In this document: piece after piece, positions 24,407-36,384 of the stretch
Position numbering within the stretch: position 1 is the stretch's first letter
Layout of the letters: each line of letters starts with the position of its first letter
DNA from: Saccostrea echinata
Taxonomy: Eukaryota
Assembly (NCBI RefSeq): GCF_033153115.1
Contig: NW_026889778.1
Coordinates: forward strand, 16,926,001-16,990,000
Length of the DNA stretch: 64,000 nucleotides
Direction of reading: 5' to 3'
Program-made: the position numbers and the translations under genes
The notes under the pieces: generated by a model
The model's input: the letters and a program-made list of their open reading frames with translations, nothing else
Database searches by the model: none
Told to the model about the DNA's origin: nothing

Positions 24407-25924
24407 TTATCTAGCTTCCACACATATTTTATATCCTTTTGGAGAGTAACTTGCACCCTGCTCCCCTTCGAAATCGTATTTCTCATGTTCAGGTTTGTAT
24501 AACTTACAATTTTGAAGCAAAGTGGTCACCAGGTAAAACACCTCAGCTTGTGCTATCAATTTGCCAATACAGACGCGTCGTCCTGCGCTAAATGCAAGTA
24601 CATTGTCAACTTTTTCTTTTATCAGACTCCCATTATCATCCAGAAATCGTTCAGGTTGGAACTCATCAGGATTACCCCAGAACTCATCATACATAACCGA
24701 GAAAATGTTAAAGTAAACAACTGTCCCTTTTGCTATCTTGGTATTTTTTACGATTACGTCGGTAGTCGTTATATGTGGTAATCCCAGTGGAACAACTGGC
24801 GCTATTCTCATGATCTCCAAAATGACTGCCTCAGTATATGATAGAACGCGACGATCCTTCAGAGATATGATTTTGTTTCGTCCAATTTTTTCGTCTATTT
24901 CTTTCTGTATTTTTATCTGAATATCTTGATATTCAGCAAGGTACAGGAATACCCATCTTAAAGTAGAAGCAGTTGTCTCAAATCCAGCAGCAAAAAAATC
25001 CTGAAGTGTGTCTACCAGTTGACTCTTAGTCAATCCCACTTCGTTTGGAGTTTCTGTTATGTTGTACTTCAAGCAAGCGTTTAAGAAACCATCCATGGCA
25101 TGGCGAGAATGACCCGGATGAAACGTTTTTATCATCTCAGCTCCATTTTCGTTTCGAGCTTTCCTAAAATTGTCAATAAAATCCAAAAATCTTTTGAAAC
25201 GTCCTGGAAAGATATATCTTAACCATGGAAGATTATCAAAATAACTTCCAGCAGAAAAAAATTCTACGATTGATCCTTGGTCTTTCATTATTTTTAAAAA
25301 GGCCGGATCATCTCGTATATTTTCACCTTTACCGTAACAAAACTGGTAGGTGATACTACCCGTAGCCGTGTATATTAAGTCGCTAGGGTTGAATGGTTTG
25401 CCTTTATAGTGCATAAAACTAGACACTAGTAAGTTGGCCTCGTCTTGTATTATTTCTTCCAAACCAGAGTTATTTGTACTTCCTATTTCTCTTATAACGC
25501 TACTTGAAATTTTACGATGCAATAAGTATCTTTCATCAAAATTGCTAAATGTGAGACCTTTCATATCGTTCAGGCTTTTGATTGAAAAAAACGGCGGTCG
25601 TGCGGCAAAACTATCCGAGTCATGAGTAAGCGTCGATTTTACTGTGTCCAAACCATTAATTATAACGGTTGGCCATGACCCAAATCGTAAAAGGAAAACA
25701 TCTCCATACTTTTCCTGATACTCTTTGAACTTATTCAAAGGTCTTGAACCAAGAAAAGGCATGTGTCCGAACAACGGAATTCCCCAGGGACCAGGTGGAC
25801 TGCGCCTCCACTCAAGAATTATTTTTATGGAAAAGAAAACGGTAAGTAGTATTGTTATCGATAAAAGAAAGTCCGAGGACTTTAGATCAAAATGATGATT
25901 AGTAATTGAAGATACTGTCGCCAT
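24407..25924 (-). CDS. Cytochrome P450, clan 2, CYP1-like; complete, single coding exon
   Basis: TM anchor, PPGPWG, FAARP, AGFETT I-helix, EIMR, PERF, heme motif FSAGRRVCIG. ATG at 25924 follows acceptor tttttgcAG at 25931..25930. Confidence 0.93.
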   Translation of the reverse strand: MATVSSITNHHFDLKSSDFLLSITILLTVFFSIKIILEWRRSPPGPWGIPLFGHMPFLGSRPLNKFKEYQEKYGDVFLLRFGSWPTVIINGLDTVKSTLTHDSDSFAARPPFFSIKSLNDMKGLTFSNFDERYLLHRKISSSVIREIGSTNNSGLEEIIQDEANLLVSSFMHYKGKPFNPSDLIYTATGSITYQFCYGKGENIRDDPAFLKIMKDQGSIVEFFSAGSYFDNLPWLRYIFPGRFKRFLDFIDNFRKARNENGAEMIKTFHPGHSRHAMDGFLNACLKYNITETPNEVGLTKSQLVDTLQDFFAAGFETTASTLRWVFLYLAEYQDIQIKIQKEIDEKIGRNKIISLKDRRVLSYTEAVILEIMRIAPVVPLGLPHITTTDVIVKNTKIAKGTVVYFNIFSVMYDEFWGNPDEFQPERFLDDNGSLIKEKVDNVLAFSAGRRVCIGKLIAQAEVFYLVTTLLQNCKLYKPEHEKYDFEGEQGASYSPKGYKICVEAR

Positions 25925-27494
25925 TGTTCCTGCAAAAAAATAAAATTTAGTCAATCTTTTGAAGCATAGAAAAATCGTAAAAAGTTATTTTCTTTGGACA
26001 TTATTGCATAACAATACCATGCGCCAATTTCATATCCTTTTTTTTAGAAATTGAAATAAAGCAATGATATCATTAAAATTGAAGTTTATCTCTAAAAACG
26101 AATTCCCGAGCAATTAAAGTGAATTTTTGAAATACAATCTTGCATTGATGTTGCATTGTTCAGTTTGGATGCATATGTTAGGTTTCAGTGACTCTGCACT
26201 ATGTTTACCCCTATCTTATCACATTTATAGGATTCCAACCAGACTTGCATTGGTAGTTCAATATGGATTTGATGTGATTTTACTATGCCTACATTTTCTG
26301 ACCTTTTTTTTTTTTTTTTTTTTTTGTAAATTATATTATTGAGATATTAATTATTCATTCAAACATGGAATAAGATTAAAACTACAAATGTTGTTAAGCA
26401 TAAAAAGCTATGCCTTTCTATATTTGGAAACATATAATTTACACTTATGTAAACTCTCAAAGGTTATGGGTTGCATGTATAACCTGGTATTTTTTTTCAC
26501 ATAGTGTGTAATGTAGCCTATAACTTATTGAATTACCCGTGGGTACATTTCTTCACAGATAAGAATAATTTATTCAAAGAAGTCGTATATCTGTTGTAAA
26601 ACAAAATTATTTTACACAAGTGGTGTTAATTATTATGTATTTCATATTTATATTTAGCATATTTATTTTATATTATTAAACCCTAATTGTTAAGAAATAT
26701 ATAAATCAGAATTTTTTTTGCGATATTTTGATATTTCTTCATACGTATCGATATGAATATCATCCTCACACAGAATTGATATGACGATATCTCGATATAT
26801 CGTCCCAGCCCTAAAGCATACCCTGTCGACCGATCACACCTGTCGTGAGCTCTTTGTCATGATCATTTAAACGGAAGAATCTGAAGACAATTCAGTGAAC
26901 ATTATGACCTACCAATGGGACGCATCTTAACTGTGAAGATGGCTTGTCTTTATACACATATTATTTTCACTACTTAATAGATAACTAATAAAAGACATGA
27001 GATTTCTAATTTCTATCCAAAATTTTTAAAATCAATCAAAATTATGAGAAACTGACACTGCAATTTTAATTCTTCTTTATAAAGTTTGAGAAAAATTCAT
27101 TCTTTTACATTCATTAACTTATTATAATCGTGGCGGAGATCAAGTTGGAAGTGAAAATATATATTGTTTACATTTAGATACATCTGATAATGTTATAATA
27201 CTTGAGTCAAATGACATCAAATATTATGTGTTCTACAAAAATAAGAAATTCAGATTGCTCTTATCAAAAAATATTTTAAGAAAGGATTTCTTAATTCTTT
27301 TAATTCATATTTGACATTTTAGACCAGTTGATAAATGAAAAAAAACCGTATTTTCCTGTGATTTCAAAGGCCGAACGAACTAAAAGCAGACATTACTTGT
27401 GGATTGCCTGATGCAAAAGTAATATTTAAAAAATGCTGGTATTAATAGTAAGACTTAAAATATATAATAAAAAAGATGTAAAAAGAATGGTTAC

Positions 27495-33538: not shown

Positions 33539-34750
33539 TTAAAATTCTCTTGAGACGACACGGATTTTATAGGGCTTTGGGGAGTATGTAAGACTGAATA
33601 TTCCTTCAAAATCGTATTCTTCATTCTCTGGCTTTTTAATTTCACACTTCAGCAGGACTGTGGCAAAGAGCAGAAATAATTCATTGCGTGCTAGAACCTC
33701 ACCAAGACATCGTCTTCTCCCAGCACTGAAAGCTAAAACGTTTTCTGTTTTGTCTTTAATAAGTTTTCCCTCTGAGTCAAGGAATCTATCAGGATTGAAT
33801 TCGGAAGCATTGTCCCATTGCTCATCGTGGCCTACAGAATAATGATTGAAAAAGACGAGGGTTCCTTTCCTAATAATATGACCCTTAACACAGACGTCTT
33901 CAGTTGTATAGTGTGGAAGACCCATTGGTACCACTCCCGATAAACGCATCGTCTCGTAGATTGTAGCTTCTGTAAACGGCATATCCTCTCTGTGCTTCGT
34001 AGTTATAATACCGCTACCCCCAATATTGTCTTCGATTTCTTTCTGGACCTTTAATTGAATCTCTGGGTATTCTGCCATGTAAAGAAATAGCCAAAGAAGG
34101 GTTGTTGCTACCGTATCAAACCCTGCTCCAAAAAAGTCTCCAGTAATACCCAATACGTCCCGTTTTATCACTCCAGCCTCATTTGGTTCATCGCCTAATC
34201 CATACTTTATGGTATTTGATATCAATCCATCTACAGCGTGGCGCAAATGTTTTGTATCAAATGTTTTCGATATTTCGTTGATCTTCTTTTCACGAGCTTC
34301 TTTACCCTCTTTGGTTAATTTGTAAAAGTTTTGGAGTCTTTCGCGAAAAAAGAATCTTGTCCAAGGAAGAACGTCTGTGGGACTTCCCGCCTTTGTGATT
34401 TCTTTGAAAGCCTTGTGATTCTGAATAAATTGAACATAATCTTTATCTTCCCTTATATTTTCTCCTTTGCCATAACAAAACTGATATATAACGCTTCCAG
34501 TCGCTTCCATGATGGCTTTGTACGGGTTAAAAGGCTTTTCTTTTTCTCTAACAAACTCAGACACTAATCTATTGGCCTCTTCCTGGAGAATTTCTTCCAT
34601 TTGGTTGTTTTGTTTCCCCGAGAATTCTCTAACAACAGAACTACCTATTTTCCGGAGTAGAAGATACCTTTGATTAAAATATCCAAATGTAAGCCCTCTC
34701 ATCTTTGTCAAATGCTTAAAAGAATTGAATTCTGGTTTAGCAGCAAAACT
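33539..34750 (-). pseudogene. Second CYP1-like P450, open reading frame but 5'-truncated (about 100 N-terminal residues missing)
   Basis: SFAAKP...GAGFDTV, ETMR, PDRF, FSAGRRRCLG with no stops. Homology ends exactly where the 1.43-kb repeat begins (34751); no matching N-terminal part found in the window. Confidence 0.8.
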
Positions 34751-34909
34751 GAATAATAACAATTCTTATCACCAATGAACGATTTATCATAATAAGATTA
34801 ATCAAATATATATAAATATACAAAATACAAAATGCAAATAACTCCCAAGGTGATTCACTGAATGTTACAGTAACTCAGACCTATGACTTACTCTTAGACG
34901 TCCTTTTTA

Positions 34910-34953
<44 letters not shown>

Positions 34954-35336
34954 CAAACCTATATATTAAAATAATTCATGGTTATTCTCAATTCCCTGTA
35001 ATTTGTTTTATTTAAAACAATTTGCCTTATACTATATCTGTTAATTATGGCTCCAATAACCTTATACTATATCTGTTAATTATGGCTCCAATAACTGTAA
35101 ATCCTTGGAGTACTGTTACGTCATACTGTGAAAAATGACGTCATATCAACAGATAAGAACCCTGTCAAGTCGCCATGATGTAATTCAATATAGAAGAATA
35201 TAGAAGACTTAAGGTAAGTACCTTATCAAGATATAAATGTAGTGTTAGATATATTACAAAACTTATATATTACACGTGCACTTTTTTGTTTATACACTAG
35301 AAAATAGAAATACACATCTACCGGAAATGGCGAGGA

Positions 35337-35425
35337 CAGGTTTGTCGTGCTAGAATGAATGGCCAATTCATTACCGAAACAAACCTGCATGGAGTTTGGG
35401 ACTAGCACCTGATGAGAGTTCCCTC
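35337..35425 (+). ncRNA. Putative hammerhead ribozyme with permuted (pseudoknotted) strand order, unit 1; predicted cut after 35346
   Basis: CAGGTTTGT-C-GTGCTAG ... C-GAA-ACAAACCTG ... CTAGCAC-CTGATGA-G: full core, 9-bp stem III, 7-bp stem I, G10.1-C11.1 pair. Confidence 0.7.
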
Positions 35426-36332
35426 ACAAAATTACTGGCATACTAGCCTATATCTTTTGGTATTTTTGGCATATTTTAGAATAATAAATACGCTATAGCA
35501 CAAACTCAAAATTTCTAAATTTTATTTGGCATAACTCCTTCCTGGTCGTTTTCATTATTACAATTTTCTTTTTTGTTCACAAATACGCACATATACAAAT
35601 TCCTATAAACTATCATAATCAAACAATGTATAATACTGTATGTTGGTTTTTTAGAATTATTTGTTACCTACTTACCAGAATAATAGCATGCTTTTAGAAA
35701 TATGTATAGTATTATTTGCTAATTAAAAAACAACTTATAAAATCTACATTATTGTTTAACGTTGAGTGACCAGAATCGCAGTATACATTGAAAAATTTAG
35801 AAAGTTTGTTAACACCCCCCTATTTTCAGTTTTGTCTATAACTTGTGTTAAATATTTATTGAACCCCCCTCCCCTTTTTTCGTTACTATTTAAATTGTAT
35901 CAACTCTCATCTTTATTTTCCCTGTTTATTGAGTTGACATTATACTACATGTATGACCGGCCACCAAAAAATTGATTGCTTCAGTCTCCTCGGCTGGGTG
36001 ACGTGGTGGTGTGTTTATTTATTTATAATTTATTTATTTTTTAAAAGATAAAAATAGATATACTAAGTATATCTATACGGTCATGCAGAGGCCTGCCCAT
36101 CTCTACTTCACTAAGGAAGTGTTGAGGAGATGGAACAGTGATTTGAGGCTGGAAGCATAAGGTGAACAAATAAGAATAATAACAATTCTTATCACCAATG
36201 AACGATTTATCATAATAAGATTAATCAAATATATATAAATATACAAAATACAAAATGCAAATAACTCCCAAGGTGATTCACTGAATGTTACAGTAACTCA
36301 GACCTATGACTTACTCTTAGACGTCCTTTTTA

Positions 36333-36384
<52 letters not shown>

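Follow-up and report, generated by a model that had tools for sequence, protein, structure and literature searches.

A candidate hammerhead module of non-circularly permuted strand order in a non-autonomous repeat family of Saccostrea echinata

The window, i.e. the whole stretch of 64,000 nucleotides of Saccostrea echinata DNA that was analysed (NCBI RefSeq assembly GCF_033153115.1, contig NW_026889778.1, forward strand from 16,926,001 to 16,990,000), holds a non-coding tandem repeat array placed between a cytochrome P450 gene and a retroelement. Two intronless P450 ORFs are encoded on the reverse strand, at 33539-34762 and 24407-25954, the former matching only residues 115-515 of its paralogue with 51% identity. 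This homology ends at position 34750, which fixes the left edge of the array at 34751 and indicates that the array, or a larger insertion, removed the N-terminal part of the 33539-34762 P450. On the other side, an 83-bp tandem repeat (38077-38524; 5.3 copies, 95% identity) separates the array from a DIRS-like retroelement on the forward strand (38951-42496, repeated at 5-3436), in which an ORF without Pfam match is followed by an RT/RNase H ORF and a tyrosine-recombinase ORF. Since arrays of the same family stand alone elsewhere in the genome, the one described here is probably not part of the DIRS-like element. In addition, the long ORFs of 1-25000 recur in 39060-64000 with an offset of about 39,056-39,060 bp, thus revealing a large direct duplication inside the window, which includes a Harbinger-type transposase and a Myb-like ORF (12527-15403 and 51583-54459).

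Across the family, units of the repeat measure 1390-1455 bp (about 1.43 kb) and each carries one copy of the motif that is the subject of this work. No ORF of 70 or more amino acids exists in the unit and neither a reverse transcriptase nor any other long ORF was found in or beside the fetched copies; therefore, the element is regarded as non-autonomous. The module that contains the motif is present in at least 100 copies in the genome (923 Mb, 425 contigs), as solo copies and as arrays that reach about 25 units on contig C1, 17 on C13, 9 on C17 and at least 8 on C42, and most family copies are 99-100% identical, as befits a young family. The 3' ends at about a dozen loci fall within an A-rich zone of some 12 nt, the 5' starts are scattered over the unit (positions 111, 223, 265, 312, 697, 726, 842, 872, 1223 and 1260) and two loci, L031 and L046, contain head-to-head inverted copies. 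A constant 3' end combined with 5' truncation of variable extent, with partial tandems and with inverted pairs is the insertion signature of Penelope-like elements, and it identifies the forward strand, which is also that of the motif, as the RNA strand. None of the 5' starts examined coincides with the cut site predicted below. One mosaic copy, L036, has a tandem junction that passes directly from the family 3' end into the module start, so that in this lineage the module opens the unit. The segment of about 480 nt that precedes the module in the unit, missing from L036, has a T run of 33-41 nt (34919-34951 and 36342-36382; poly-A on the other strand) and, in the spans 35025-35095 and 35117-35143, a 35-bp direct duplication and two CRE-like sites, TTACGTCA and TGACGTCA, which are separated by 12 nt and precede TATA-like runs; this segment may have arisen by promoter capture or by retro-insertion in antisense orientation.

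Between 35337 and 35423 the GUC triplet, CGAAA and CUGAUGAG stand all in register with two helices that correspond to stems I and III of a hammerhead ribozyme (Table 1). Every coordinate and pairing proposed in a previous sequence-only reading of this DNA proved correct on recheck, including the perfect stems in register with the core: stem III is formed by 9 bp between the exactly complementary 35337-35345 and 35379-35387, and stem I by 7 bp between 35347-35353 and 35402-35408, again exact complements. The conserved core nucleotides are complete (C3 U4 G5 A6 N7 G8 A9, G12 A13 A14, A15.1-U16.1 and an H17 other than G), and so are the preferred pairs C15.2-G16.2, G1.1-C2.1 and G10.1-C11.1 that accompany the GUC triplet. 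A further helix of 4 bp, GGGA/UCCC, ties the 5' side of 2.x to the 3' side of 10.x, and the GAA in block G is the only one of the unit whose 3' side pairs with 16.x. With the hammerhead split into blocks S, C and G, as was done by Eckert, Friedrich, Weinberg and Weinberg (NAR 2023, PMC10085705), the motif reads S (16.x-H17-1.x), G (11.x-GAAA-15.x) and C (2.x-CUGAnGA-10.x), an order that renders the fold pseudoknotted. The S1-S3-S2 order of a pseudoknotted hammerhead core, as originally put forward, therefore holds; the accompanying remark that no described natural example was known does not, because S-G-C is the block order of the type-SGC hammerhead reported in that same study.

Table 1. Features of the repeat array and of the permuted hammerhead motif in the window.
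Feature	Position	Strand	Remarks
Non-coding repeat array	34751..37687	+	Starts with about 83 nt of a 5'-truncated unit; full units of 1423 and 1431 bp follow; ends at the fixed 3' end of the family
Conserved 126-nt module, copy 1	35316..35441	+	None of the 73 subfamily-diagnostic differences lies inside; copy 2 at 36747-36872
Block S	35337..35353	+	16.x of stem III 35337-35345; C17 = 35346 (predicted cut 3' of C17); 1.x of stem I 35347-35353
7-bp hairpin with GGCCA loop	35354..35372	+	Arms 35354-35360 and 35366-35372; followed by AC 35373-35374
Block G	35375..35387	+	C11.1, G12 A13 A14 (C11.1-GAA 35375-35378); 15.x of stem III 35379-35387
10-nt link, distal stem III to tie helix	35388..35397	+	
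Tie helix, strand a (GGGA)	35398..35401	+	Contiguous with 2.7
Block C	35402..35416	+	2.x of stem I 35402-35408; C3-A9 CUGAUGA 35409-35415; G10.1 35416
AGU and tie helix, strand b (UCCC)	35417..35423	+	UCCC 35420-35423; AGU unpaired or in non-canonical pairing against AC
Second motif copy, next unit	36768..36856	+	Identical
A-rich end zone of arrays and solo copies	37670..37687	+	Reverse transcription putatively starts in this zone; equivalents inside the array end at 34833 and 36256

Whether the gathering score was applied or E was relaxed to 10, Rfam models retrieved nothing relevant at the motif (35337-35423), which bears out the expectation that searches for nested structures would miss it. 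A descriptor of the S-G-C order that accepted G-U and asked for stems of 4+4 bp or longer picked out just two sites in the window, the motif at 35337 and its twin in the next unit, whereas 32 Mb of composition-matched first-order Markov sequence yielded 37 matches, the best of them with 5+7 or 6+5 bp as compared with 7+9 here. By extrapolation, the resulting chance expectation is about 1e-5 per window and below one per genome, before demanding Watson-Crick pairs throughout, the 10.1-11.1 pair and the tie helix. Given that no random-sequence match comes near 7+9 bp, chance is not a serious explanation. Together with it we weighed another ribozyme class, e.g. one of HDV type, which is found at the 5' ends of some retrotransposons, and we consider it scarcely credible that the motif belongs under either heading. 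The helix order a-b-c-c'-a'-b' does match P1-P2-P3-P3'-P1'-P2', and in L036 the unit begins, at its 5' side, with the module; however, the helix order is all that fits an HDV-like fold, which was rejected. By inspection, C35337-G35387 occupies the start of P1 in place of the G1.U wobble, the would-be P3 has 7 bp, the 2-bp P1.1 and the catalytic C of J4/2 are absent, with no C in the strand before P2' except for its first base, and none of the HDV-type models of Rfam gave a match.

The genome also contains ordinary repeats that bear hammerheads, which speaks in favour of the ribozyme reading. Cores in the canonical order were matched 82 times as compared with 47 in the control; around 40 of these canonical-order sites (e.g. 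C3:3613454, C6:10354794 and C32:7835133) have a 3-bp stem II, GGC...GCC, round a 9-nt loop, and smaller families of the same order show CUCU/AGAG or CCCU/AGGG stems. A whole-genome search with the Rfam model RF00163 was uninformative: it scored no more than 73 of its 83,300 candidates, and its controls remained silent. No further complete S-G-C family was found in the genome (11 matches vs 14 in the control).

The weakness of the motif is its stem II, as had been cautioned from the beginning. Pairing in register consists of a single Watson-Crick pair, G10.1-C11.1, the next positions being A.C, G.A and U.U, and no other stem II partner was found in the unit. The link between 1.x and 11.x is not a short linker of about 3 nt, being formed instead by the 7-bp hairpin with its 5-nt loop plus AC. 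A 4-bp stem II with a 2-nt bulge, made at the expense of this hairpin, was ruled out as energetically poor (about +2 kcal/mol vs -4.5 for the intact hairpin). Nested alternatives were likewise discarded: a canonical hammerhead of type I, II or III (cyclic S-C-G) does not fit a sequence whose sole G block lies between S and C, a canonical type III has no downstream G block to draw on, and a type II reading through GGAAAU (35323-35328), with a stem III of 4 weak pairs, was rejected because its 10.1-11.1 would be G.G. Folded without pseudoknots, the module reaches its minimum free energy (-33.9 kcal/mol, z = -1.4) with UUUGUC, which spans the cut site, paired to GAUGAG of the core, and this nested structure competes with the active fold. 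On the other hand, distal stem I, the hairpin, the tie helix and the stack of G10.1-C11.1 on G.A would come together in a four-way junction with links of 0, 2, 3 and 0 nt, and this putative junction may substitute for the missing stem II.

By geometric reasoning, stem I, at 7 bp, is roughly as tall as the G-C pair and the G.A stack plus the links, so a monomer fold is feasible and a dimer topologically unnecessary; our analysis provided evidence neither for nor against the latter. A hammerhead acting solely between molecules or units, nucleated for instance by the self-complementary GGCC of the hairpin loop, is in our opinion very improbable. Such a mode would be in line with the palindrome inside GGCCA and with the minimal hammerheads of amphibian repeats, reported to self-cleave efficiently as dimers only, but the hairpin loop varies freely in old copies, all link lengths permit the monomer fold on the same geometric grounds and type-SGC ribozymes cut in cis as monomers (PMC10085705).

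Comparison of two subfamilies provided an indication of constraint. The second subfamily is made up of six copies (L031, L032, L033, L036, L039 and L052), which were compared over 35246-35760; the two differ at 73 shared positions, all of them located in the 389 flanking nucleotides (18.8%), and at none of the 126 nucleotides of the module, where about 24 differences would be expected at the density of the flanks (P about 4e-12). Conservation extends over the whole of 35316-35441, loops and linkers as well as 39 nt that do not belong to the hammerhead part. Private changes of single old copies are about as frequent inside as outside the module, and they include the core-killing C3A, U4A, A9G and A14U together with uncompensated changes in the stems. 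A module free of fixed differences and evenly hit by private changes suggests that selection acts on the source elements and that copies decay neutrally once inserted. Homologous repeats had been pointed to by the sequence-only reading as the place to look for both conserved core boxes and compensatory changes. The boxes are kept, with GUC, CGAAA and CUGAUGAG at the correct spacing in 84 of about 100 copies, but across 18 distinct copies no compensatory change was found in stems I and III. The only double change among these 18 sequences affects the tie helix, from G-C to A-U in L031, and this helix is broken in three other copies. In a very old copy (C51:8157412), where the cut site and stem I are gone, the hairpin survives by way of an A-U to U.G double change, and more diverged copies were located by their flanks at C56:2599139 and C22:17402458. 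The patterns of the module retrieved no copy from another species in two metagenome scans and one viral scan; their one match (L055) is without a cleavage-site block and was dismissed as a chance match.

These data also bear on the possibility that the motif is an inactive rearranged relic devoid of present function, apparently conserved just because of recent spread or because template switching or gene conversion exchanged this segment between subfamilies. For a 126-nt block to have zero differences between subfamilies that are about 19% apart on both sides, the exchange would have to be recent and to have precise bounds, and retention of all core positions in 84 of about 100 copies would not be expected of a relic; we therefore deem this explanation improbable, even if the youth of the family, the absence of covariation, the existence of mosaic copies such as L036 and the persistence of core-mutated arrays are all compatible with it. 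Concerning the latter, some arrays are built of units with A14U or G16.2A/C, and arrays can thus grow without an intact core. In the arrays at C42:1-12000 (L042) and C17:7917800-7920500 (L054) most units have G16.2, beside the cut site, changed to A, and two units of the C42 array keep the G, a mixture that points to unequal exchange or conversion at the DNA level instead of a single rolling-circle event.

A further alternative emerges from a second repeat family, here family X, with at least 28 copies (e.g. C1:29792113-29792293 and C29:16753575-16753692, both on the reverse strand). Family X shares with the module, and in the same order, a 5' box ATCTNCC(C)GGAAATG, CGAAACAAA and CUGAUGAGA; it has CGAAAC and CUGAUGAG 45 nt apart in the G-to-C order, with an internal hairpin, and its module-like 5' box reads CCCGGAAATG. 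No cleavage-site block, i.e. a U-H site with stems in register, could be found within about 60 nt on either side. In this it resembles the 'HHR_half_core' motifs of the hammerhead-less Naiad elements (Craig et al. 2021, PMC8557442), and the occurrence of the boxes without a cleavage-site block implies that they might serve another, non-catalytic role, e.g. recognition by a reverse transcriptase. Thus, the module as a whole could be a non-catalytic device needed for spread, either a structure for loading or recognition by the reverse transcriptase of a putative partner or a 5' leader/promoter, with its boxes as relics of a ribozyme that lost stem II. This would account for conservation at every position of 35316-35441, regardless of its place in the hammerhead, and would agree with the order of boxes in family X, with the Naiad half-cores, with the dispensability of hammerhead catalysis for Penelope-like insertion in vitro and with the missing stem II. 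Yet a non-catalytic role requires neither GUC, C15.2-G16.2 and G10.1-C11.1 nor two perfect stems in hammerhead register, and we regard it as rather unlikely, though not negligible.

On balance, the module is probably hammerhead-derived and under selection. Whether it is a working self-cleaving hammerhead module of type-SGC architecture, carried by the RNA-sense strand of a non-autonomous retroelement, is a proposal to which we would give an even chance; its fuller version, an active S-G-C hammerhead whose near-absent stem II is replaced by the four-way junction and which processes 1.4-kb retrozyme-like RNAs in an animal, is advanced more tentatively. According to this model, stems III and I would form an H-type pseudoknot around C17, the CUGAUGA strand being held as the loop of the GGGA/UCCC tie helix and G10.1-C11.1 serving as the sole canonical pair of stem II. 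Multimeric transcripts of the arrays would be cut after C35346 in each unit, releasing unit-length RNAs with 5'-OH and 2',3'-cyclic phosphate ends that could be ligated to circles, as in retrozymes; a Penelope-like reverse transcriptase would then start at the A-rich internal site and copy one or more rounds. Our confidence in catalysis is limited by the missing stem II, the competing fold, the core-mutant arrays and the lack of insertions at the cut site, and the activity may be slow or protein-assisted.

Non-circular permutations of an RNA are known, in the literature searched, from a single 2023 study of environmental RNA. If the motif cleaves, this architecture would move into animal mobile DNA, retrozyme-like elements would extend to 1.4 kb and the hammerhead would be able to function with a junction in place of stem II; for the first time, a eukaryotic genome would be seen to encode a non-circularly permuted ribozyme. 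By implication, retroelements that have half-core boxes but pass for 'hammerhead-less' may hide permuted ribozymes unseen by nested descriptors, and surveys that scored Penelope-like and other retroelements as devoid of hammerheads would need a pseudoknot-aware rerun. If it does not cleave, the module would still be a sharply bounded RNA or DNA element of 126 nt under strong selection and a possible recognition signal for a reverse transcriptase.

The reduction of stem II has a precedent in the engineered minizymes of the 1990s, in which stem-loop II was deleted and the core kept, stem II amounting to the 10.1-11.1 pair or less. Minizymes close this pair by a short loop and are usually much slower; in contrast to that engineered closure, the one proposed here would be a junction with three helices.

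With regard to the host repeat, the metazoan non-LTR retrozymes described by Cervera and de la Pena (NAR 2020, PMC7229834) are likewise AT-rich tandem repeats that do not code for protein, with a single hammerhead in every unit and with dispersed arrays ranging from dimers to tens of units. Their life cycle has been proposed to proceed via self-cleaved, circularised RNA (PMC7229834), and abundant circular RNA is counted among their traits. Retrozyme units are, however, of about 170-400 nt and bear canonical or minimal type I hammerheads (PMC7229834), whereas the units reported here measure 1.39-1.46 kb and contain a permuted motif. The fixed 3' end derived from internal initiation, the 5' truncation, the partial tandems (pseudo-LTRs) and the inverted head-to-head copies are shared with Penelope-like elements (Cervera and de la Pena 2014; Craig et al. 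2021, PMC8557442; Frangieh et al. 2024, PMC11167929). This class typically bears hammerheads, of the minimal type I, and its members encode an RT/GIY-YIG ORF that our non-autonomous repeat lacks. The ribozyme of Penelope-like elements may want protein help and may be dispensable for insertion itself, its catalysis being dispensable for insertion in vitro, and elements of the Naiad type, without canonical hammerheads, carry the half-core motifs in either order (Craig et al. 2021, PMC8557442).

The closest relative in architecture is the type-SGC hammerhead (Eckert et al. 2023, PMC10085705). Its natural representatives, the HRIMA-1 motif and variants, comprise 583 metatranscriptome sequences in which stems I, II and III all covary; they cleave in cis at the analogous site, an activity lost in a core mutant, and their hosts are presumed circular RNA agents with hairpin ribozymes (PMC10085705). 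[quoted passage not shown] As deduced from its oligonucleotides, SGC-1 consists of 16.x, C17, 1.x (5 nt), a 3-nt link, 11.x (5 nt), GAAA, 15.x and tie strand a, followed by 2.x (5 nt), CUGAUGA plus one U, 10.x (5 nt), one nucleotide and tie strand b (PMC10085705). The literature searched holds no report of such permutations in any animal genome or retroelement. Differences are found in stem I (7 bp here vs 5 bp in SGC-1 and SGC-3), stem II (1 vs 5 bp), the link from 1.x to 11.x (a 19-nt hairpin plus 2 nt vs 3 nt) and the tie helix (4 vs 6-7 bp), as well as in the host, an animal-genome DNA repeat as opposed to metatranscriptomes. Common to both are the block order, the complete core, stems I and III, a pseudoknot invisible to nested models and the connectivity of the tie helix, with GGGA directly 5' of 2.7 and UCCC 3 nt after G10.1, while the 10-nt link from stem III to the tie helix lies inside the type-SGC range of 0-44 nt. 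Since the defining stem II is lacking, we do not file the motif as a member of type-SGC and regard it as a variant on the same plan; judged from its sequence, it may be the first ribozyme of type-SGC order seen in an animal genome.
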